Of a stretch of 15,570 nt of DNA, positions 200-15,570 are shown in pieces. The stretch lies in the sequence record MZ666939.1; one strand, written 5' to 3'. A model generated the notes under the pieces. The model worked only from the letters and a program-made list of their open reading frames with translations. It was not told where the DNA came from and did no database searches. The translations under genes and the position numbers were made by a program. Every line of letters starts with the position of its first letter. The first letter of the stretch is position 1.

Positions 200-355
200 A
201 TGAAAAAATATTCTATGATTGATGAGCTTGTAATCATACTAAAAAAGGTTCAAGATAATGCTTTAAATTGTACTTCTAATCAGGTTTCTAAAATAGACTA
301 TTCAGAACTTAGAAATATAGCAAAAGAATTTGCTAATAAGCATTATAATGAATAG
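200..355 (+). CDS. Hypothetical protein, 51 aa (start revised from TTG 86 to ATG 200)
   Basis: GAGGT-A8-TG initiation context. The 86-199 extension runs through the repeat region. Confidence 0.7.
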   Translation: MKKYSMIDELVIILKKVQDNALNCTSNQVSKIDYSELRNIAKEFANKHYNE

Positions 356-386
356 GCAATAGTAAAATAAGAGATGATAAAAAAAA

Positions 387-539
387 ATGGTTGAAAAAAT
401 AGCGCAATGGATTAAAGAAATGGAAAAAGAATTAACTAAGAAATATCAGGATTTCTTTGAAAACAGAACGAGTTATACCGATGAGGAAATAAAAGAACTT
501 GTAGAAAAAGCAATAGGAAAACAATTCAAAAAAAACTAA
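387..539 (+). CDS. Small helical hypothetical protein, 50 aa (MVEKIAQWIKEMEKELTKK...), not in ORF track
   Basis: Manual translation. GAGATGAT SD-like motif 8 nt upstream. Fills the gap between neighbours. Confidence 0.75.
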   Translation: MVEKIAQWIKEMEKELTKKYQDFFENRTSYTDEEIKELVEKAIGKQFKKN

Positions 540-557
540 AAAAGGGGTAAAAAAATT

Positions 558-707
558 ATGATTGAATTAAAAAGAATTTATAAATGTCCTAATTGCGACG
601 CTATCGTATTAGAGAAGGTTTATTTCAATACAATCCATCGTTGTTCCTGTGGTGTTGATACTCATGCTAATAATTTATTGCTGCAATTACAGAAAAAAGA
701 TGACTAA
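558..707 (+). CDS. Zn-ribbon microprotein, 49 aa (CPNC...CSC), not in ORF track
   Basis: Manual translation MIELKRIYKCPNCDAIVLEKVYFNTIHRCSCGV...; GGGGT SD upstream. Confidence 0.8.
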   Translation: MIELKRIYKCPNCDAIVLEKVYFNTIHRCSCGVDTHANNLLLQLQKKDD

Positions 708-711
708 AAAA

Positions 712-1038
712 ATGGTTGGAAAAAGAGAAATCGCAGACATATTAGATGTATCTGAAATTGATTTAGATTGGATATTAAATAATTATAGGGAAATATGGAA
801 TGGCTCTCCAGAACATTTAGAATTGATTGATAGAATACAAGGACAAATTTTCTCTATAACTAATAGATTATATTTACTTAGAAGTAGGATTGAATACGAT
901 ATAAATAAAGGAAATACAAATAGAAGAATTTCAAGAGCTGTGGATAACGCAAGTAAAAAAGTTGGAAATTTATTCTTAGCCTTCCTAAATTTTGAAGAAG
1001 TAAAATATTATAATCTTAAAAGAAAATTAATCAATTAG
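712..1038 (+). CDS. Protein with N-terminal HTH-like motif (start revised to 712, alternative 700)
   Basis: KREIADILDVSEIDLDWIL resembles a helix-turn-helix. The 649 start overlaps the upstream Zn-ribbon gene. Confidence 0.65.
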   Translation: MVGKREIADILDVSEIDLDWILNNYREIWNGSPEHLELIDRIQGQIFSITNRLYLLRSRIEYDINKGNTNRRISRAVDNASKKVGNLFLAFLNFEEVKYYNLKRKLIN

Positions 1039-1114
1039 ATTTTGTTTTTTAAGGTATTGGGCATTTAGCCTAATCGAAAAGCAATTAATAGAAAAGAGAT
1101 GATTGAAAAGAATG
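1039..1114 (+). repeat. ~75-bp intergenic repeat, copy 1 (oligo-T, hairpin, SD, ATG)
   Basis: ATTTTGTTTTTTAAGGTATTGGGCATTTAGCCTAATCGAAAAGCAATTAATAGAAAAGAGATGATTGAAAAGAATG, near-identical to 2134-2208 and 2514-2587. Confidence 0.97.
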
Positions 1115-1725: not shown

Positions 1726-1923
1726 ATGAGTACTATTTTTGTCTATGTATGTAATAAGTGTGGTGAGAGTTTTGATGTAGAAATGGAAGATGATTTTGCT
1801 AAGATTCCTTTCGAGGGGGTATGGAGTTGTGAATGTGGTGAGCTTATTAGGGTTAGATGGGATGGGAAGGAGTTGGAATATATAAAACGCAAAAACTTAA
1901 AGAAAAACGGTGATAATCTATAA
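1726..1923 (+). CDS. Zn-ribbon protein
   Basis: CNKC...CECG; abuts the upstream stop; GGGGA SD. Confidence 0.8.
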   Translation: MSTIFVYVCNKCGESFDVEMEDDFAKIPFEGVWSCECGELIRVRWDGKELEYIKRKNLKKNGDNL

Positions 1924-2120
1924 TGACGACAAACCTAATTACTTTTATTTGTCAAGGTTGCGGAACTAAAGTTCTCGCACATATAGACCGAGAAGGTGTT
2001 TTGAGATTTAGTATTAGAGATAAGCTAATAGGTTCGGAAGTACTTCTTAATGATTTAGGTTATTATGTTTGCGTTGATTGTCATAAAAAATCAGTTTTAA
2101 GATTTAGGGTGTTTGATTAA
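1923..2120 (+). CDS. Zn-finger protein
   Basis: CQGC...CVDCH; TAATG stop/start overlap; GGTGA SD. Confidence 0.8.
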   Translation: MTTNLITFICQGCGTKVLAHIDREGVLRFSIRDKLIGSEVLLNDLGYYVCVDCHKKSVLRFRVFD

Positions 2121-2208: not shown

Positions 2209-2352
2209 AAATGTATAACCTGTGGTGAAAACGAAGCAATTAACGATTTTTATAAAGAATGTGAAAGATGCATAGAGAAATATCAAGAACAACAAAAAGA
2301 GAGAGGTTTTTTAGAAGCATTGAAAGAATTAAGTGATTTTGGAGTGTGGTAA
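2206..2352 (+). CDS. Zn-finger microprotein, 48 aa (CITC...CERC), not in ORF track
   Basis: Manual translation MKCITCGENEAINDFYKECERCIEKY... The start is supplied by repeat copy 2 (alternative in-frame ATG 2194). Confidence 0.8.
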   Translation: MKCITCGENEAINDFYKECERCIEKYQEQQKERGFLEALKELSDFGVW

Positions 2353-2357
2353 AAAAA

Positions 2358-2513
2358 ATGGGATTTGTCGAAAGAATGAAAGAAAATCATGATTTTATTA
2401 CAGAATGTAATGATTTAGCATTTATCTTAGATATTGATATAAAGGAATTAGATAAATGGTTTAATAAATCTGAAAATAAGGAATTAATAAAACTATTAGC
2501 TTTAATCAAATAG
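2358..2513 (+). CDS. Small HTH-like protein, 51 aa, not in ORF track
   Basis: MGFVERMKENHDFITECNDLAFILDIDIKELDKWFNK...; resembles the HTH-like segment of 712..1038. Confidence 0.7.
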   Translation: MGFVERMKENHDFITECNDLAFILDIDIKELDKWFNKSENKELIKLLALIK

Positions 2514-2587
2514 ATTTTGTTTTTTAGGGTATTAGGCACTTAGCCTAATCGAAAAGCAATTAATAGAAAGAGATGATTGAAAGGATG
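2514..2587 (+). repeat. ~75-bp intergenic repeat, copy 3
   Basis: Perfect 7-bp stem ATTAGGC/GCCTAAT (2531-2549). Shares an extra 11/12 nt upstream with copy 1. Confidence 0.97.
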
Positions 2588-2947
2588 GGAATGAAATTGA
2601 ATAGAAAAATAAAGAGAGCAAATAGAGATTTTTATAGAGCAATTAAAGAAAGAGAAAATAAGAAGTTTTTAATAATGAAAGAAGGCGCAATATACGATTT
2701 AAACAAAATAGACCAAATAAGTAAATTGAAATTAGATTTTTTCTGTTTTGATTATTATTTGAATAGAAAAGAATCTAGACCTTATTTATGTCAAATCTGT
2801 AAATTAAACGAAACGTGCCAAAACAATTTTGATTATGAATGTGTAGAAACTAGCGATTTTTTATTTAATGCCAAAACAATATTTACTGTTAAGGATGATT
2901 TTCTTGATTCTTTAATTAAGAAAAGTAATAAAGCGTTGAGGGGTTAA
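2585..2947 (+). CDS. Hypothetical protein with Cys cluster (CQIC...C...C), start 2585 or 2573
   Basis: ORF track. GAGATGAT lies 7 nt before ATG 2585. Confidence 0.75.
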   Translation: MGMKLNRKIKRANRDFYRAIKERENKKFLIMKEGAIYDLNKIDQISKLKLDFFCFDYYLNRKESRPYLCQICKLNETCQNNFDYECVETSDFLFNAKTIFTVKDDFLDSLIKKSNKALRG

Positions 2948-2952
2948 ATAGA

Positions 2953-3084
2953 ATGTTATTACACGAATACAAAAAAATATTAAGAATAAGGATTTTATTA
3001 GACGAAAATCCTACTAAAGCAAAACAATTGCTAACTGATTTAATCAATAAATTTGAATTAGAACATTATAAAATGGGTGAATAA
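2953..3084 (+). CDS. Small helical hypothetical protein, 43 aa, not in ORF track
   Basis: MLLHEYKKILRIRILLDENPTKAKQLLTDLINKFELEHYKMGE; GAGGGG SD; fills gap. Confidence 0.65.
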   Translation: MLLHEYKKILRIRILLDENPTKAKQLLTDLINKFELEHYKMGE

Positions 3085-4426: not shown

Positions 4427-4442
4427 GGAATATATTTATAAA
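4427..4442 (+). promoter_or_regulatory. Candidate TATA box of the capsid operon
   Basis: GGAATATATTTATAAA with TTTATAAA at 4435-4442, in the largest internal intergenic gap, upstream of the capsid gene. Confidence 0.6.
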
Positions 4443-8199: not shown

Positions 8200-8442
8200 A
8201 TGCTATTACAATATTCGATTGTTGGGTTTGAATGGATAATTGGTCTTGGATTAGCTTTTGGTCTTGCTTTCTTTTTAAATTATTTGACTTACAACGATTT
8301 ACCAACTTTTTTTATTTTTTTAACTATTTTTGACGCTTTTATGGTCTGGGTTGATTTTTTACCGTTATGGACGCTTGTAATTTGTTTAATAATCTTAACT
8401 GTAATTGCTTATACTAGTGTAAAAGGAAAAGAGGTGGATTAA
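8200..8442 (+). CDS. Small multi-TM membrane protein
   Basis: Almost entirely hydrophobic; GAGGTG SD. Confidence 0.85.
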   Translation: MLLQYSIVGFEWIIGLGLAFGLAFFLNYLTYNDLPTFFIFLTIFDAFMVWVDFLPLWTLVICLIILTVIAYTSVKGKEVD

Positions 8443-8443
8443 T

Positions 8444-8884
8444 ACGATAATTGGATTAACTTTAACTATATTACTTGTTTTAGTTTTATTGTCTTTAATT
8501 CTTGGTGGAGTTTTTGTTAATGTTCCAATGAACGTTGATGTTAAAGGAACACAAAAGCTAGAGGGTGCAACTAGTAGTTTTGAACTACCAATAGGTGATT
8601 TTACGATTAGAATCGACCCTGTAGCAGGATTAATAGTTATATTTATAGTTATAATTGTGATAGCAGGACTTTTAGGTATTCAGGTTTTAGCTTCTGGGCT
8701 TTCACCTGAAAGTATTAAATTTATAATGAACGCAATTTTATATTTTGGTATTTGGAGTTTATTAAGTGCTTTATGCTTTAACTTAATAATTAGTATTGAA
8801 ATATTTGGAACTTTAGTTTATATTACTCTTACAATTGCTTACGTAATTGGAGTAATACAAAAACTTAGTGGAGGGAACAATTAA
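8444..8884 (+). CDS. Multi-TM membrane protein, probable non-canonical start upstream of the TTG 8489 call
   Basis: The frame is open from 8423 and encodes TIIGLTLTILLVLVLLSLILGG. GAGGTG SD at 8431-8436. Confidence 0.7.
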   Translation, partial: TIIGLTLTILLVLVLLSLILGGVFVNVPMNVDVKGTQKLEGATSSFELPIGDFTIRIDPVAGLIVIFIVIIVIAGLLGIQVLASGLSPESIKFIMNAILYFGIWSLLSALCFNLIISIEIFGTLVYITLTIAYVIGVIQKLSGGNN

Positions 8885-9186
8885 TGCCAAAACCACCTGT
8901 CTGTGAATGTGAAGCAGATGCAATTATTCTTAGCGCTTGGATTATTATTTCTCTTTCAATTTTGATTTTTTTAATGGTTTTAACGTTGTTTATGTATTAT
9001 TCAAGAAAACCCATAGAATTTGTACCAATGCTTATAATATTTCTATTTTCAATAATAATTGGTATTGGTTCGATTTCAATTCAACTTCCGCTTACGCCTT
9101 ATTTTCAGATATTTTTTATGCTATTTCAAACAATATTTTTTGTATTAGTAGCTTTAGATTATTACAATAATAAAAAAGGATGGTAA
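8884..9186 (+). CDS. Three-TM membrane protein with N-terminal CEC motif
   Basis: TAATG overlap; three hydrophobic stretches; GGAGG SD. Confidence 0.8.
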   Translation: MPKPPVCECEADAIILSAWIIISLSILIFLMVLTLFMYYSRKPIEFVPMLIIFLFSIIIGIGSISIQLPLTPYFQIFFMLFQTIFFVLVALDYYNNKKGW

Positions 9187-9190
9187 AATA

Positions 9191-9628
9191 ATGAGAAATA
9201 AAAAGAAAAAGTATTACGCTGTATTTTGTATAAAAGAGCACGATGTCTTTAACATGTTAGCTAAGAAGCGGATTAGAGGCTCAAATCAGATAGTTCGCTT
9301 TAGAAAAGGAACTTATGTCGTAAATGTTTCTTTTCCTACTTATGTTAAAGGTTTGAACGTATTTTACTTCATAGATATTAAGAAAGGGCAACAATTAGCA
9401 AAAAATACAGAAATAAATATCGCTAAAGGGCACATTCTTTTTAAAGAGAATGCTAAGGATAAACCGTTAATGTCGCCTAAGTTTCTTGATATGTTAATAT
9501 CTCAAAAGATTGTAGGGCAATTAACATCCAACTTATCAAATAACGCCTTGAAAATGAACATCATTACTCTAATTGTTGGGGCTATCATAGGTGGGTTAAT
9601 AGGATATATTATTGCGGGGATGATTTAA
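9191..9628 (+). CDS. Basic protein with C-terminal TM anchor
   Basis: IITLIVGAIIGGLIGYIIAGMI at the C-terminus. Confidence 0.8.
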   Translation: MRNKKKKYYAVFCIKEHDVFNMLAKKRIRGSNQIVRFRKGTYVVNVSFPTYVKGLNVFYFIDIKKGQQLAKNTEINIAKGHILFKENAKDKPLMSPKFLDMLISQKIVGQLTSNLSNNALKMNIITLIVGAIIGGLIGYIIAGMI

Positions 9629-9971: not shown

Positions 9972-10667
9972 ATGCTAGTTTGTATCTTAGGGGCAAAAGG
10001 TTCGGGAAAAACGCTATTTACTACACGAATGGCAATTAATTCAAAAAGAGAAGTTTACGCTAATTATTGGATAAATATTGAGAATTATAAGCCTTTAGAA
10101 ATAATGGATTTTATAGATTTGCCTAATAATGTAGATGTTTTGATAGATGAGGGTTATACGTGGTTAGAATCCAGAACATCGAGTTTTTTTTTGAATCGTT
10201 TTTTGTCTTATATCTTATGGCAATCCCGAAAGCGAACTATAGACATCTATTTAACTGCCCAACGCTTTAGGTCGCTTGATTTAAGGTTCAGAGACGAAAG
10301 CGACATTATCGTTAAATGTAAGACTAGAACTAATTTAAAGAAAGACGATTTTAAATACGCTATTTTATGGATTGCGGAGAATAGGGAAAAGCATTTCACT
10401 TTATCGTATAATGACGCTAAAAAATATTTTGATTTATTCGATACTTATGAAATCGTTGAACCATACACTAAAGAGCAATTAGAGTTTAAATTATTAGAAG
10501 GCGACCCGGAAAAAAGATGGAAAAAAGCAATGGAAATAGGGGATATAATTTCTAAAGGAATTGATTTAATAACACATCCAATTATTAAAGCAAGGTTAAT
10601 GAAATTTGGATACGATTCGAGTTATGAGCCTTTAGTGTATGTTTATCTTAAAGGCTTAGTAAGTTAA
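9972..10667 (+). CDS. Zot/inovirus pI-like P-loop morphogenesis ATPase
   Basis: Walker A GAKGSGKT (9990-10013), Walker B VLIDEG, QSRK and YLTAQ motifs followed by LDLRFR. Confidence 0.88.
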   Translation: MLVCILGAKGSGKTLFTTRMAINSKREVYANYWINIENYKPLEIMDFIDLPNNVDVLIDEGYTWLESRTSSFFLNRFLSYILWQSRKRTIDIYLTAQRFRSLDLRFRDESDIIVKCKTRTNLKKDDFKYAILWIAENREKHFTLSYNDAKKYFDLFDTYEIVEPYTKEQLEFKLLEGDPEKRWKKAMEIGDIISKGIDLITHPIIKARLMKFGYDSSYEPLVYVYLKGLVS

Positions 10668-10727
10668 AGTTCACTAAATCAAGATGGGGGGTAGTGAATT
10701 AAAAAAAAGACTTCCCAAATAGTATTT

Positions 10728-11042
10728 ATGATAAATAGAAAGAAAATTGAATTAATAGAAAAAAGAAAAAGAGAGAGAGCGCTTAAAGAATTAGAAATGA
10801 AATGTGATATTTGTCAATTGAGCCATTTTAACGAAGTATTTATCTTAAGGAATAATAGATTTGCTAAGATAGTCCCCCGCTCTATTTCTAAAACCAAAAC
10901 AAGTAGAGTTTGCTGGGAATGCGCTAGATGGTTGTTTAAAAATCGATATTATAATTTTGGAGATTCCTGGAGAAATCTTTTTTTTTATCAATTGCATATA
11001 AAAGATAAAAATAGAGAAAAATACATGGTGATTCACGCTTGA
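10728..11042 (+). CDS. Basic Zn-finger protein
   Basis: CDIC...CWEC. Confidence 0.75.
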   Translation: MINRKKIELIEKRKRERALKELEMKCDICQLSHFNEVFILRNNRFAKIVPRSISKTKTSRVCWECARWLFKNRYYNFGDSWRNLFFYQLHIKDKNREKYMVIHA

Positions 11043-11287
11043 CTGATTGGGATAGACTAGTGGATTATATCATCGATTATTTTCCCGACCCTTCATATTC
11101 AAGTCAAGATATTAGAGATTGGGCAAATAAGAGCGTTCCCGCATGGAAGTATATGGATAATAATACAAAAGACAAGATTTTGGGTGATTGGGAAAACTTT
11201 ATTTTGCCAGAAGTTAAGAGTTGGCTTAGACGAATGAGTGAAGGTTTTAGAGAGAGAATAAGAAGGTTTCTGGGGAGGGCTTATTAA
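11039..11287 (+). CDS. Trp-rich helical hypothetical protein (TTG start)
   Basis: GGTGA SD; TTGA overlap upstream; TAATG overlap downstream. Confidence 0.8.
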   Translation: MTDWDRLVDYIIDYFPDPSYSSQDIRDWANKSVPAWKYMDNNTKDKILGDWENFILPEVKSWLRRMSEGFRERIRRFLGRAY

Positions 11288-11500: not shown

Positions 11501-12409
11501 GTGAAGCAAAAGACTAAAATTAATTTTAAGAGAAGTTTCACCTGCGATAAATCGATTGCAAAAGGGATTAAGTTTTTGAATAAAAATGGATTTTATACCG
11601 TTGGATGTTGTTCGGGTTTAAAGATTGACCACGATAACGAAAGAAATAAAATGTATATCGAATTTGCGGGATTAAGCAAGGCAAAAGAGCTTAAGGTTAA
11701 ACATATAGCAAATCAATTTGGTTTTAATGTTAAAAATAAAAGGATATTGAGAATTGAGAGCGAAAATGATGATAAATTAGAAATGTTTAACGATTTTATT
11801 TCCTATTTGAAATATAATTCCCAGAAACTTAGTTTAAGAGCAATCGGAATCTCTAATTGGGCTTACGATTCTGAAAAGAAAAAAAGATATTCAATTCAAT
11901 TCTACGATTACGATTTTAACGGGGATATAGAACACATTCCAAGAGAGGATTTATTGCGAATATTAGAGATATTTCCTTACGATTGCTTAATGTATGAGAC
12001 TAAGGGGGGCGTTCATTTTATTAGCTTTTCGATTCTGTTGGGGCTTCATGTCTCTAAAGCGAGGGTTTTAGAAACGAGCAAAAGCTTAGAAGGTCAAGAT
12101 TATTGGACTGAAGGAAAAGATTTAACGTTGAGAGTAAGTGCAAAATGGAAATTAAGGCTTTTTAGAAAGCGTAAAATCGTGTCAAAAAAGCCAAAATTTA
12201 AAGGATTAATTAAAGGTCCGGATAATTTAATCAAAACTTCAAATACCTTTCTTAATTCGAAAAATCCGAATAAATACGTCGTTTCTAAAAATCATTTGGA
12301 ATTTTATCGGAAATATATGGATTTGCCCGATTGGGTTTATGAGCTATATGCTGATTGCGATATGAGAGATTTAAGGATTAAGAATTACCATTACAAAACG
12401 AGGGATTGA
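11501..12409 (+). CDS. Two-domain protein: TYW3-like N-terminal motif plus AEP primase-polymerase-like C-terminal domain
   Basis: N-terminus DKSIAKGIKFLNKNGFYTVGCCSG. C-terminus FYDYD (motif I-like), YETKGGVHF (motif II-like), DLTLRV (motif III-like). Confidence 0.55.
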   Translation: MKQKTKINFKRSFTCDKSIAKGIKFLNKNGFYTVGCCSGLKIDHDNERNKMYIEFAGLSKAKELKVKHIANQFGFNVKNKRILRIESENDDKLEMFNDFISYLKYNSQKLSLRAIGISNWAYDSEKKKRYSIQFYDYDFNGDIEHIPREDLLRILEIFPYDCLMYETKGGVHFISFSILLGLHVSKARVLETSKSLEGQDYWTEGKDLTLRVSAKWKLRLFRKRKIVSKKPKFKGLIKGPDNLIKTSNTFLNSKNPNKYVVSKNHLEFYRKYMDLPDWVYELYADCDMRDLRIKNYHYKTRD

Positions 12410-12414
12410 TTCAA

Positions 12415-12558
12415 ATGGGATTAATGAAATATTTGGCAATTGCTTTTGAAAATAGAAAGCATTCATGCTCTAAATGTCTCTATGGTAAACACGAGAATCT
12501 GGATGTTTGTTATAAATGTGTTAAAAAAGAATCGCAATTTAAACCTAAGAGGGATTGA
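12415..12558 (+). CDS. Zn-finger microprotein, 47 aa (CSKC-x10-CYKC), not in ORF track
   Basis: Manual translation; GAGGGA SD. Confidence 0.75.
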   Translation: MGLMKYLAIAFENRKHSCSKCLYGKHENLDVCYKCVKKESQFKPKRD

Positions 12559-12559
12559 A

Positions 12560-13198
12560 ATGAATCTAAAAAAGAGAACTGAAAAAATAAGATATAATAG
12601 CGTACTTTTAATTGTTAAACATATTACGCCTTCTTTATATCAAAAGATTTTACCAATAATTAGTAATAATGTTAAACTTTTGTCAAAAGTTCCAAGACCC
12701 TCTATTCTTTTTATGAAAGAATATTTTAATCAAGATTCTGTAATTGGTGCTGAGATTGGTGTAGATAAAGGAAGAAATGCTAAAAGTATTTTAACTGAAT
12801 TAAACATTGATAAATTGTACTTAGTGGATGCATGGTTTAATTATAAAGAAATTCAAGCAAATAGACCTCAAAAGACTAATTTTAAATTTGTTTTAAGAGA
12901 ATTTGAAAATGATAAGAGAGTAGAAATAATTAGAGCTTTTTCTATAAATGCTGTAAAAGAGATTGTTGATAATTCTCTTGATTTTGTTTATATTGACGCA
13001 AATCATTTGTATGAATTTGTTTATCAAGATATTAATTTATGGTATAATAAAGTGAAAAAAGGGGGAATTATTGCCGGACACGACATTTTTGGTCATATTG
13101 GTGTTTTAAAAGCTGTTAAAAGATTTTGTAATGAAAAGAATTATGTTTTTAATATAGAAATCCCAGATTGGTATTTTATTAAAGGAGGCTTAAAATGA
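12560..13198 (+). CDS. Class I SAM-dependent methyltransferase, Methyltransf_24-like (start revised to ATG 12560)
   Basis: GAEIGVDKG, LYLVDAW, LDFVYIDANHLYE and GGIIAGHD motifs. Confidence 0.85.
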   Translation: MNLKKRTEKIRYNSVLLIVKHITPSLYQKILPIISNNVKLLSKVPRPSILFMKEYFNQDSVIGAEIGVDKGRNAKSILTELNIDKLYLVDAWFNYKEIQANRPQKTNFKFVLREFENDKRVEIIRAFSINAVKEIVDNSLDFVYIDANHLYEFVYQDINLWYNKVKKGGIIAGHDIFGHIGVLKAVKRFCNEKNYVFNIEIPDWYFIKGGLK

Positions 13199-13917
13199 TT
13201 GAAAAAGAAATTGTAGGTCAAATACCCTATGATATTGAGAAAAGGCAAAACGAAATTCCTAATAAGAATATGATGGGTTTTAAAAGCGAATTATTAAGAT
13301 TTCCTAAGTATCAAAAATTAAACCAAATCAATGAACATAGAAATCAAAACAAAAATAGGGAACTCGCCTTTTATTACGAAACAAGCGCGGTATTAGGGAA
13401 ATTACAGCTTTCTATTAAATTGAGGGCTTTAATATTGAGAAATGCTGAGAACTTTTATTCAGTATTAGGGTATAGTACAAACCATAGAGGTGTAAAGGTT
13501 CTAATTCCTGTGTCTGTTTATCTTACTTGTTTAGAACACTTTATTTTCGTTAGACGTAAAGAATTTTATCAGTTTTGTACTAAGCATAATTTTGACCGTT
13601 GTTTGAAAGCAATTCTCATAAAGAATAATACATTAAGATTAAAACTATTATCTAAAGATTTTAGAATCAAAACTATAAAGGTTCAATTAAACGGATTACA
13701 AACTCATTTTTATCTCAATGGTTTGTTTTTTCAGAAAGCTTTCGAGAATTTGGATAAATATTTCAATAAAGTAAAAAACGCTATGAATACATCAATAACC
13801 GCGATTATTTTTGATTTAACTGCACATCAATTAATGGGGAAATTTATTCTTATGTCTGAAGTTTGTCATTTTCTTGGAATAACGCAATCTACAGTCTTTA
13901 GGAGGCGCTTATATTGA
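13195..13917 (+). CDS. tfb: Divergent TFB/TFIIB-like transcription factor (two cyclin repeats plus C-terminal HTH, no Zn ribbon)
   Basis: RELAFYYETSAVLGKLQL, RGVKVLIPVSVYLTC and MSEVCHFLGITQSTVFRR align by eye with archaeal TFB segments RNLAFALSELDR...LxL, RGR...AAxYxAC and QREVAxVAGVTEVTIRNR. Confidence 0.7.
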   Translation: MIEKEIVGQIPYDIEKRQNEIPNKNMMGFKSELLRFPKYQKLNQINEHRNQNKNRELAFYYETSAVLGKLQLSIKLRALILRNAENFYSVLGYSTNHRGVKVLIPVSVYLTCLEHFIFVRRKEFYQFCTKHNFDRCLKAILIKNNTLRLKLLSKDFRIKTIKVQLNGLQTHFYLNGLFFQKAFENLDKYFNKVKNAMNTSITAIIFDLTAHQLMGKFILMSEVCHFLGITQSTVFRRRLY

Positions 13918-14318
13918 TTGAAATACGCGATAAAAACTTTAGCAAAAATTATTCTAACGGTTGTCGTCATTCCAAAAATCTAAATACTCTATTTGATATT
14001 AGTAATAGCGGTGTAGATTATTATAACGATCATAACATTGGATTTGAGTTTAAAGAAAGTTTTATGGAAAATCCTAAAAATATTTTTTTTAAAGTACCAA
14101 GGTACCAGGCCAAAATTTCAGATTATTTTGTTTTTTGTGTAAGTGCCATAGAATATATTTTAGTCCCAAAAGAATATATTTTAGAAAGATTTAAATTTAA
14201 AACTAAAAGGAAAAACGCTAATATCCGAATTACTACAATTCGAGATATGGCAATATATACTACTATTGATGTAAACGATTTGAAAGAATATATCGATAAA
14301 ATAGAGGTGAAAGGCTAA
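13914..14318 (+). CDS. PD-(D/E)xK-type nuclease-like protein (TTG start)
   Basis: GVDYY...IGFEFKES motif; GGAGG SD. Confidence 0.6.
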   Translation: MIEIRDKNFSKNYSNGCRHSKNLNTLFDISNSGVDYYNDHNIGFEFKESFMENPKNIFFKVPRYQAKISDYFVFCVSAIEYILVPKEYILERFKFKTKRKNANIRITTIRDMAIYTTIDVNDLKEYIDKIEVKG

Positions 14319-15186: not shown

Positions 15187-15510
15187 ATGTTAGCTAAAAT
15201 TACCAAAACATCAAATCAAATCGATTTTATTTTTGAGTGTAATTTTACTAATTTTTTAAAGAGGTTGCAGTTAAATCTTGCTCTCTTAAAAGAAAGGAAA
15301 GAAGTAAAAAGGATTATTCCTTTATTCTTGTATCCTATTAAGAGATTTGACATACAGAAAAGCGAAAACTCTCTTTTCTTAGTTAGCATAATACAGCGTA
15401 CCCCGTACCGTATCACCTCCGACCTAATCTGCAGATTAGGTATTATAGCAAAATGGTTTCTTTTGTTCTGTTATTGTTCTGGTTTGAATAATCATATTAC
15501 AAAAGCCTAA
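15187..15510 (+). CDS. Hypothetical protein; 3' third overlaps palindrome/repeat DNA
   Basis: AAGGAG SD 9 nt upstream of the ATG. Confidence 0.55.
   Translation: MLAKITKTSNQIDFIFECNFTNFLKRLQLNLALLKERKEVKRIIPLFLYPIKRFDIQKSENSLFLVSIIQRTPYRITSDLICRLGIIAKWFLLFCYCSGLNNHITKA
15422..15441. repeat. Perfect 20-bp palindrome ACCTAATCTGCAGATTAGGT
   Basis: Read directly; 10+10 self-complementary. Confidence 0.95.
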
Positions 15511-15524
15511 GACCTTAACCTTTA

Positions 15525-15570
15525 TGTTCCGTTCTGGTTTTGTTCTGTTCTGTTTTGTTCTGTTCTGTTT
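15525..15570. repeat. Pentamer tandem array, including (TGTTC TGTTC TGTTT)x2 at 15541-15570
   Basis: Six consecutive TGTTY units preceded by TGTTC CGTTC TGGTTT; more GTTCTG copies at 15465-15485. Confidence 0.9.

Follow-up and report, generated by a model that had tools for sequence, protein, structure and literature searches.

The gene at 13195–13917 in record MZ666939.1, the Lokiarchaeota spindle virus WyrdV1 (the window is the whole stretch analyzed, 15,570 nucleotides, and is 100% identical to this record), encodes a real, very divergent relative of TFB/TFIIB without the polymerase-docking zinc ribbon. It is a member of an Asgard-specific TFB-like family that lies below Pfam thresholds and is new here. 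The reading that we favor, with a probability of about 0.45, is that the protein is a promoter-bound modulator that does not itself dock RNA polymerase (RNAP), its putative binding to DNA, TBP and RNAP being read from alignments. The identity of the gene is already known, and its identification is itself no novelty: GenBank annotates the CDS as TFIIB-like, and the WyrdV1 paper names a TFIIB-like protein, the top HHpred match in that annotation being a giant-virus TFIIB-like protein (e.g., mimivirus L250) with a probability of 99.94%. The original prediction called it unusual for a spindle virus to have a basal factor of its own; the annotation, the publication and the TFB homologues in several other archaeal viruses speak against this. 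Such homologues occur in the rudiviruses ARV2, ARV3, MRV1 and SSRV1, in the Sulfolobales viruses YNP1 and YNP2 and in Halorubrum tailed viruses (PMC9501531), and have also been reported for the Asgard viruses JinchiV1, PBV300 and Baiyanviruses.

The ORF map and translation give a protein of 240 residues (Table 1). Its start had been taken as fixed by a GGAGG motif and an ATGA overlap, and both were confirmed. The upstream O-methyltransferase gene ends in a TGA that overlaps the ATG (ATGA, 13195–13198), which suggests that the two genes are translationally coupled. In the ORF map no start codon lies between the preceding in-frame stop and 13195, so that an N-terminal extension in this frame is impossible. 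The TFB-like gene is part of a conserved module of co-directional genes, which also encodes a 302-residue protein with invariant YDYD and GxHF motifs as well as small zinc proteins. A primase-polymerase assignment for this 302-residue neighbor was rejected, since its DxD/GxH motifs are merely suggestive and PDB, Pfam and PHROG give it no support.

Table 1. Coordinates of the WyrdV1 TFB-like gene, its upstream motif and the segments of the encoded protein
Feature	Position	Strand	Basis or remark
GGAGG Shine-Dalgarno-like motif	13184..13188	+	6 nt 5' of ATG; read from sequence
TFB-like gene	13195..13917	+	profile, fold, hhalign, GenBank annotation
Residues 1-22, remnant at B-reader position	13195..13260	+	no ribbon, no Cys; pLDDT 54-60 (low-confidence)
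Residues 23-55, B-linker-like segment	13261..13359	+	hmmsearch, hhalign, family conservation
Residues 56-152, first cyclin-like repeat	13360..13650	+	alignments, model, Foldseek
Residues 153-240, second cyclin-like repeat	13651..13914	+	model, Foldseek, hhalign, column statistics
Residues 217-240, terminal helix-turn-helix (SEVCHFLGITQSTVFRRRLY)	13843..13914	+	hhalign, MAFFT, column statistics, model

The TFB-like segments of the WyrdV1 protein are detectable by profile or structure methods only. As a single sequence it had no significant match in Pfam, NCBIfam, PHROGs or the PDB, and the TFIIB repeat (PF00382) did not appear among its Pfam matches at E ≤ 10. When ten long relatives were scanned singly, every TFIIB-repeat match fell below the Pfam cut-off; the repeat was matched at E ≤ 0.01 by 5 of 55 family members. 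A profile of 8 sequences gave merely E = 1.1 to TFIIB. With a ribbon-less profile of 33 homologues, human TFIIB was matched at E = 3.4e-9 over residues 81–219, i.e., the B-linker and repeat 1, and yeast Sua7 at 2e-5. Contamination by ribbon-bearing relatives was rejected as a source of the TFIIB match, the value of 3.4e-9 still being obtained with a profile rebuilt from ribbon-less members only. Using hhalign against P. furiosus (Pfu) TFB, residues 71–295 of TFB were aligned (E = 3.6e-4), a span that opens with the B-linker and closes with the terminal helix-turn-helix (HTH).

The predicted fold agrees. An AF2 model made with the 8-sequence alignment was unusable (pLDDT 52); the prediction was repeated with 55 sequences, giving a pLDDT of 88.7. 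The best 20 Foldseek PDB matches of this model were all TFIIB or TFB, and the best archaeal structural match was the P. woesei TFBc structure 1d3u_B (TM 0.70, normalized to 1d3u_B; rmsd 3.4 Å; 198 columns). Non-TFB proteins with a cyclin fold were clearly worse, with E = 1e-2 for Brf2 (Brf2/Brf1 E ≥ 0.01) and E ≥ 0.05 with a TM of ~0.3 for cyclins, and giant-virus TFIIB-like proteins were among the best BFVD structural matches. The second repeat opens with a family-specific S-x-x-F-R-x-K-x-I motif, in which R157 is present in 52 of 55 sequences. Helices are modeled at residues 220–227 and 231–235, and the protein stops directly after the recognition helix. The B-linker and core start, both cyclin repeats and the terminal HTH that had been read from the sequence are thus borne out by the profile match, the hhalign alignment and the AF2/Foldseek results.

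The N-terminal C4 zinc ribbon is absent and, as had been stated, there are no Cys pairs in the N-terminus, the first Cys being C112. At least 33 homologues start at the same point as the WyrdV1 protein, just past the last ribbon strand of the ribbon-bearing relatives, which in the alignment read CxxC..CxxCG-[IV]VLE-x-QKLEYHRPY..Q. Residues 1–22 carry a conserved clade motif, P-R/Y-D-F/I-E-K-R-Q-N-E-x-P-N, and its clade-specific form PRDFEKRQNE is invariant among 8 close homologues. A canonical B-reader (EWRxF-type helix plus loop) was not found at this position, where there is a family-wide deletion of ~17 residues versus Pfu and Asgard TFB; the ribbon-bearing relatives carry a short EYHRPY..Q segment, and the WyrdV1 clade has Q-I/L-P-Y/R-D without the Arg. 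Residues 23–55 do align with a B-linker, namely human TFIIB 81–112 and Pfu TFB L71–R100. Few parts of the family are as well conserved as this segment (G28, E32, Y39 and L42, with G28 and L42 nearly invariant). The zinc ribbon is essential for RNAP recruitment, the TBP and BRE functions residing in the core (PMC6212726, PMC3025549).

The residues facing TBP and the BRE were mapped with alignments at 14%–18% identity. A conserved Arg (human R169) and a Thr of TFB/TFIIB contact two Glu residues of the TBP C-terminal stirrup, and the human TFIIB mutation R169E prevents TBP-TATA association (PMC7221094, PMC6004067). In the low-identity alignment, L113 (13531–13533) stands at the position of the TBP-contact Arg (human R169/Pfu R164) and R120 (13552–13554) at that of the TBP-contact Thr (Pfu T171/human T176). 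Leu is the majority residue at family position 113 (L in 33 sequences, K in 14, Arg in none), and the Arg is kept in a canonical Asgard TFB on contig L006 and in the TFBs of SSRV1 and a Halorubrum tailed virus. R98 (13486–13488), which aligns with human R154/Pfu R149, is kept in 49 of 55 sequences. The TBP-contact surface would therefore be lost in part, with the Arg/Thr pair replaced. It had been proposed that the protein could occupy TBP; because the stirrup-contact Arg and Thr are replaced by Leu113 and Arg120, this cannot be safely inferred, and with the signature lost the protein could conceivably not be at TATA/TBP at all.

The terminal HTH corresponds in position to the HTH with which TFB reads the BRE (EVxxFLGIxxST aligned versus EVAEVARVTEVT). 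V283 and R286 of human TFIIB reportedly read the BRE, and the BRE-reading Val and Arg positions are occupied in WyrdV1 by S232 and F235. Because these positions are Ser and Phe, HTH specificity probably differs from that of canonical TFB, and the HTH had been rightly called divergent. The host-type TFB on L006 retains both the TBP-contact Arg and the Val/Arg pair.

Homologues comprised 8 close sequences (52%–76% identity) and 50 representative clusters. The contigs that carry ribbon-bearing family members look cellular, and several wyrdvirus or MGE-like contigs carry a large ribbon-less clade; in the largest clade of the tree, 37 of 38 rows are ribbon-less. The TFB-like gene was also found in two more wyrdvirus-like contigs (L004 and L010) and in the MGE-like contigs L001, L003 and L009. 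Scanning viral contig and genome contig collections with the close-family alignment yielded no relatives, and searching a word index with the 33-sequence profile yielded nothing further. That the ribbon-less clade might form a distinct TFB-derived class, acting on host initiation without RNAP docking or canonical TBP contact and arising, through loss of the ribbon, from TFB-like paralogues of Asgard cells, is a doubtful though possible extension. Its members might, for instance, be promoter-capture or anti-TFB proteins that have a DNA specificity of their own, or proteins with a novel B-linker engagement of RNAP.

In the mechanism that we propose, the protein would bind promoter-proximal DNA in a TFB-like geometry, Arg98 being kept, the B-linker conserved and the HTH kept but re-specified. 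Host RNAP would not be docked or positioned as by TFB, because the zinc ribbon is absent and the B-reader vestigial, and any interaction with TBP would be non-canonical, given the replacement of the signature Arg/Thr pair that contacts the stirrup. The protein would then be a promoter-selective modulator of host initiation, acting either as a competitor/repressor or as a timing switch by which host TFB is displaced or remodeled at some viral promoters, and perhaps at host ones too. Since RNAP could not be docked as TFB does, we prefer a modulator to a basal factor, and a self-sufficient basal factor is not likely. Unlike giant viruses, which encode their own RNAP and often TBP (PMC7221094), WyrdV1 encodes neither, so its factor must act on host machinery.

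The domain order, i.e., B-linker, two cyclin-like repeats and C-terminal HTH, is that of canonical archaeal TFB (P. furiosus/woesei, PDB 1D3U/1AIS, and the Asgard TFB on L006), as is the repeat-1 framework of the loop Arg (R98) and Y109/C112; the differences are those already described in the ribbon, the B-reader, the TBP-contact and BRE-reading residues and overall identity. Other archaeal-virus TFBs are likewise encoded by viruses without their own RNAP, and their function is putative throughout (PMC9501531). They were found by tblastn with Pfu TFB (23%–38% identity), however, and include the ribbon segment, because their alignments begin at residues 1–15, whereas the WyrdV1 protein lacks it. 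The SSRV1 TFB keeps a ribbon segment with just two of four Cys together with the TBP-contact Arg; WyrdV1 has neither.

Closest in domain content are the engineered core-only proteins TFBc and ΔN-TFB, cores without a ribbon (PMC2602779, PMC6212726). TFBc forms TBP/DNA complexes 5–10 times better than full-length TFB (PMC2602779), and RNAP recruitment has been assigned to the N-terminal domain that it is missing (PMC2602779, PMC6212726). Unlike TFBc, the WyrdV1 protein keeps the B-linker and lacks the canonical TBP-contact residues, and its binding mode need not match. Sulfolobus TFB3, a paralogue with a specialized, non-basal role (PMC6101591), is also a naturally truncated TFB relative, although its truncation is reciprocal (a ribbon without a core). 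The ATV protein ORF145/RIP offers a viral parallel in that it interferes with host initiation, part of it mimicking, at the RNAP clamp, the B-linker of TFB (PMC9501531); in contrast to the WyrdV1 protein, its fold is unrelated, it binds RNAP directly and it is a global repressor, and no similarity between the two was found.

No viral TFB has been characterized biochemically (PMC9501531). The WyrdV1 protein can be seen as a natural separation-of-function variant, in which core and linker are kept and ribbon, reader and TBP signature are lost. It bears on how archaeal viruses take over a eukaryote-like transcription machinery, on whether initiation can be regulated by a TFB core that does not dock RNAP, and on how Asgard viruses time gene expression.

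A tentative alternative, on the unlikely side, is a positive viral initiation factor that replaces host TFB at viral promoters and recruits host RNAP non-canonically, initiation being redirected via the re-specified HTH; promoter redirection by viral TFBs has been considered in reviews (PMC9501531). Recruitment could proceed through the B-linker and the PRDFEKRQNE motif, or through a separate zinc-ribbon partner. The TFB linker contributes to RNAP binding (PMC3025549), and strong conservation of this RNAP-cleft element in the family could reflect productive RNAP engagement, which would favor an activator; the invariance of the N-terminal motif points the same way. However, RNAP recruitment is described as requiring the zinc ribbon (PMC6212726), and the B-reader of the WyrdV1 clade is shortened and degenerate. 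As for a partner, TFB3 shows that separate proteins can share the functions of TFB between them (PMC6101591), and WyrdV1 encodes several small zinc-finger/ribbon proteins. None of the small WyrdV1 proteins was significant against the TFIIB ribbon, however (best E = 0.04), and no zinc-ribbon gene accompanies the TFB-like gene consistently: none lies near it in L010, and the 70-residue ribbon gene is missing in L004. A split TFB with its ribbon supplied by a small viral zinc protein was rejected on these grounds.

Host shut-off by a global decoy, the idea put first in the original prediction, with the core occupying TBP/TATA-BRE complexes genome-wide and RNAP not recruited, appears very unlikely. 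The protein is ribbon-less, as such a decoy would be, canonical TFBc binds TBP/DNA very efficiently (PMC2602779), and ATV RIP represses archaeal RNAP globally by another route (PMC9501531, PMC5123050). Against this stand the replacement of the stirrup-contact Arg and Thr by Leu113 and Arg120, R169E in human TFIIB blocking TBP-TATA association (PMC7221094, PMC6004067), and BRE-reading positions unlike those of the host-type TFB. Moreover, a global block would hit the virus too, because it encodes no RNAP and canonical BRE/TATA elements are present in its early cassettes (PMC2602779). Spindle-shaped viruses are also described as non-lytic and chronically released.

Equally improbable is a non-transcriptional, ORC6-like use of the TFB core in DNA binding, e.g., in viral origin recognition or the organization of a replication complex: the conserved module, the lack of a polymerase, rolling-circle endonuclease or other identified replicase in WyrdV1 and ORC6_2nd matches in four relatives would fit it, but those matches do not reach the Pfam cut-off and coincide in part with the TFIIB repeat, TFIIB/TFB come first in Foldseek with no ORC6 among the 50 matches listed, the databases lend no support to a replication function of the 302-residue neighbor, and L010 carries the TFB-like gene despite its own protein-primed PolB.

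The original prediction pointed to an element repeated three times in the early region as a candidate target of the divergent HTH. The repetition is confirmed: the 16-mer CGAAAAGCAATTAATA has three exact copies in WyrdV1 versus 0.09 expected, and forms the core of a longer repeat cassette of ~88 nt. A special target is not needed to account for it, however. The 16-mer matches CGAAAAG, the canonical BRE core of archaea, with a TATA-like box after it and an ATG 20–26 nt downstream, and the M. jannaschii promoter consensus is MRCCGAAAAG plus TWTATATA (PMC2602779). Most simply, it would serve leaderless early genes as an ordinary promoter for host TFB and TBP. Two further candidates were rejected, i.e., the 16-mer as a genome-wide motif, degenerate matches being at chance (10 found versus 9.5 expected), and the cassette palindrome as a stable hairpin (z-score −1.14, not significant). 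A TATA-like element, GGAATATATTTATAAA, occupies positions 4427–4442 and lies upstream of the MCP gene at a distance of 82 nt.

The architecture set out in the original prediction, a B-linker, two cyclin repeats and a terminal HTH without a Zn ribbon, proved correct. Queried as a single sequence, the WyrdV1 protein found no match in Pfam, NCBIfam, PHROGs or PDB. An exhaustive HMMER search recovered 50 representative clusters of relatives; the close homologues number eight (52-76% identity). A profile built exclusively from 33 ribbon-less members matched human TFIIB with E = 3.4e-9 over residues 81-219, i.e., the B-linker and first cyclin repeat, and yeast Sua7 with E = 2e-5. Using hhalign, P. 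furiosus TFB (a sequence confirmed to match chains 1D3U_B and 1AIS_B at 100% identity) was aligned over residues 71-295 (E = 3.6e-4). When an AlphaFold model derived from the 55-sequence family alignment (pLDDT 88.7, pTM 0.80) was compared with PDB by Foldseek, all 20 best matches were TFIIB/TFB, with 1d3u_B (P. woesei TFBc) at an rmsd of 3.4 Å and a TM of 0.70. Brf2 and Brf1 ranked next, and cyclins scored far lower (TM ~0.3). The viral structures matched were giant-virus TFIIBs and the TFB of the rudivirus SSRV1.

The absence of the ribbon does not depend on the choice of start codon. Position 13195 is the first start after the preceding in-frame stop, and therefore a longer N-terminus is impossible in that frame. 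As predicted, a GGAGG precedes the ATG, which overlaps the methyltransferase stop as ATGA, and the N-terminus is free of cysteine, the earliest being C112. An N-terminal CxxC...CxxC ribbon is present in distant family members of 300-465 aa, in which the Pfam TFIIB Zn ribbon gave sub-threshold matches only. The sequence following it reads "...CG[IV]VLE-x-QKLEYHRPY-x-x-E-x-x-Q...IG", and ribbon-less proteins, including that of WyrdV1 (MIEKEIVGQIPYDIEKRQNEIPNKNMMG), start immediately past the final ribbon strand.

In the B-reader loop, ~17 residues are deleted throughout the family relative to canonical TFBs, and the WyrdV1 clade lacks the reader-motif Arg. Conservation is high in the B-linker, where G28 and L42 hardly vary, and R98 in the first repeat, aligned to human R154 and Pfu R149, is present in 49/55 sequences. 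At the C-terminus, the HTH can be aligned to the one that reads the BRE (EVCHFLGITQSTVF versus EVAEVARVTEVTVR), Ser232 and Phe235 occupying the Val and Arg positions of the latter; in human TFIIB, V283 and R286 are the BRE-reading residues. An Arg and a Thr of TFB/TFIIB make highly conserved contacts to two TBP-stirrup glutamates (PMC7221094), and R169E in human TFIIB abolishes TBP-TATA association (PMC6004067). In our alignment, these two positions are Leu113 and Arg120 in the WyrdV1 protein. Across the family, 33 sequences have Leu at column 113, 14 have Lys (concentrated in long ribbon-bearing forms, 8/13) and none has Arg; the TBP-contact Arg is kept in the canonical Asgard TFB on contig L006, the SSRV1 TFB and the TFB of one Halorubrum tailed virus.

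RNAP recruitment requires the Zn ribbon, and TBP and BRE binding reside in the core (PMC6212726, PMC3025549); formation of TBP/DNA complexes is 5-10 times more efficient with a core-only TFBc than with the full-length factor (PMC2602779). Without a ribbon and with the reader reduced to a vestige, a protein should be unable to assemble a productive PIC alone. With a probability of about 0.45, we favor a promoter-bound modulator that would act at a subset of promoters, as a competitor/repressor or a temporal switch, because the ribbon is missing and the reader vestigial, a DNA-contact Arg, the HTH and the B-linker are kept, and the gene recurs in viral genomes dependent on host RNAP. A non-canonical activator, for which the strongly conserved B-linker is the main argument, would be possible but rather unlikely. 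The decoy mechanism proposed originally was not upheld: the TBP-contact signature is lost and the virus itself relies on canonical promoters, making a protein that occupies TBP globally improbable. An ORC6-like, non-transcriptional role would be a long shot.

The proposed target was a 16-mer, CGAAAAGCAATTAATA. Its three exact copies are real (at 1075, 2170 and 2550; 0.09 expected), but its role as target was not supported. Each copy lies within a repeat of ~88 nt composed of a T-run, an imperfect palindrome (ATTAGGC-N5-GCCTAAT), the 16-mer and a conserved ATG-containing stretch. Strong M. jannaschii promoters have an extended BRE, MRCCGAAAAG (core CGAAAAG), then TWTATATA (PMC2602779). Against this consensus, the 16-mer is BRE-like, including CGAAAAG, and AATTAATA resembles a TATA box; all three copies have an ATG 20-26 nt past this box, a spacing that fits leaderless transcripts, and GenBank CDSs start at 1112 and 2591. 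From these features, the element is most simply read as a canonical BRE/TATA promoter of the host type that serves early genes, and the ~88-nt cassette probably combines terminator, operator and promoter in one unit for leaderless early genes. Degenerate versions of the 16-mer were not enriched elsewhere in the window, and the hairpin stability of the palindrome was not significant; the palindrome is a better candidate operator for one of the dimeric HTH proteins than for the TFB-like protein. We found no specific tie between the cassette and the TFB-like protein; at the BRE-reading positions, the HTH of this protein is different.

The relatives with a ribbon are encoded on MAG contigs of Promethearchaeota/Lokiarchaeota, among cellular-looking neighbors such as an ABC transporter, a nitroreductase and URO-D. 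Repeatedly, a giant prenyltransferase-repeat protein is found near them; on L006, L007 and L008 it has 993-1427 aa and lies within about 4 kb of each relative. The wyrdvirus-like contig L010 also encodes a ribbon-less protein, and WyrdV1 is therefore not the sole wyrdvirus with a TFB-like gene. In a quick ML tree, incompletely resolved and with ribbon columns included, two canonical TFBs formed a separate long branch, ribbon-bearing lineages were basal, and the largest clade (SH-aLRT 85) comprised 38 rows, all but one of them (37) ribbon-less. The tree would fit a history in which the ribbon was lost in one main event.

A Pfu TFB query retrieved the TFBs of YNP1/2, Halorubrum tailed viruses, ARV2/3, MRV1 and SSRV1, which keep the ribbon segment, since they aligned from Pfu TFB residues 1-15; judged by its cysteines, the SSRV1 ribbon may not bind zinc. 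The ribbon-less WyrdV1-type protein therefore stands apart from the known viral TFBs, a point of which we found no mention in the texts consulted.

The gene itself is already known, so that the claimed novelty of a virus-carried basal factor fails, although the homology and missing ribbon stand. In the phage/archaeal-virus collection, the sole tblastn match of the ORF was MZ666939.1 ("Lokiarchaeota virus WyrdV1, complete genome", 15,570 bp), with 100% identity over 240 aa at the same coordinates. Medvedeva et al. (bioRxiv 10.1101/2021.07.29.453957) report this 15,570-bp genome and raise recruitment of host machinery by such factors as a possibility; their supplementary table gives gene 15570_00034 an HHpred probability of 99.94% to the mimivirus L250 TFIIB-like protein. 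What we add is modest: that both the ribbon and the TBP signature are missing, and how far the ribbon-less clade extends. This addition makes a clear biochemical experiment worthwhile.

Coordinates of features in WyrdV1 and on contigs carrying relatives or comparison TFBs
Sequence	Feature	Coordinates	Strand	Remarks
WyrdV1	~88-nt intergenic repeats around the 16-mers	1024-1111, 2119-2206, 2499-2586
WyrdV1	65-aa CxxC...CxxC protein	1923-2120		weak generic Zn-ribbon matches: A2L, RPAB4, TFIIB, Rrn7 (E 0.03-0.17)
WyrdV1	TATA-like box	4427-4442		82 nt upstream of MCP gene
WyrdV1	302-aa hypothetical protein	11501-12409		56-75% identity; adjoins TFB-like gene in L001, L003, L004
WyrdV1	GGAGG	13184-13188		upstream of TFB-like ATG
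WyrdV1	TFB-like ORF	13195-13917	+	240 aa
WyrdV1	134-aa ORF	13914-14318		TTG start overlaps TFB-like stop (TTGA); own GGAGG
L001, L003	ribbon-less members			WyrdV1 right-hand module only: Zn proteins, 302-aa protein, TFB-like gene, 134-aa protein
L004 (wyrdvirus contig)	ribbon-less member			synteny to WyrdV1 from adhesin through TFB-like gene
L006 (cellular-looking Asgard contig)	relative	10001-11242		413-425 aa (with L007); full ribbon
L006	canonical TFB	18482-19411	-	309 aa
L007 (cellular-looking Asgard contig)	relative	8334-9611		413-425 aa (with L006); full ribbon
L008 (cellular-looking Asgard contig)	relative	10001-10804		267 aa; half ribbon only
L009 (13-kb contig)	ribbon-less member			small ORFs
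L010 (Logan SRR30652678, 12,372 bp)	ribbon-less TFB-like gene	2211-2972		33% identity; contig has MCP, adhesin, morphogenetic block, ATPase, protein-primed PolB
L012 (SSRV1)	gp30, rudivirus TFB	298-1110		ribbon segment kept, 2/4 cysteines (CPPD...CTET)

The TFB-like gene has an O-methyltransferase on one side and a hypothetical protein on the other, with an ASCH protein further on. The start of the methyltransferase (12440-13198) is ambiguous, the ORF opening with TTG at 12440 and the GenBank CDS at 12503; a small GenBank CDS (12415-12558) overlaps it. In L001 and L003, the 134-aa ORF comes directly after the TFB-like gene; its identity, 68-72%, exceeds that of the TFB-like gene. It is absent behind the TFB-like gene in L004; its D...E-F-K motif suggests that it might be a nuclease. 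The 302-aa protein has invariant YDYD and K-x-G-x-HFI motifs, which we have a hunch may resemble primase-polymerase motifs I/II; Pfam, PHROG and PDB gave no support. No replication protein was identified in WyrdV1. The matches of the 65-aa protein are too weak and generic to identify it as a TFB ribbon supplied in trans. At the 3' genome end are tandem GTTTTGTTCTGTTCT units (15537-15566), 81% complementary to 126-156, and the 5' end begins with C7; these end features (1-160, 15460-15570) could be a terminal or recombination-related structure. The record is linear, labeled 'complete' and filed under Fuselloviridae.
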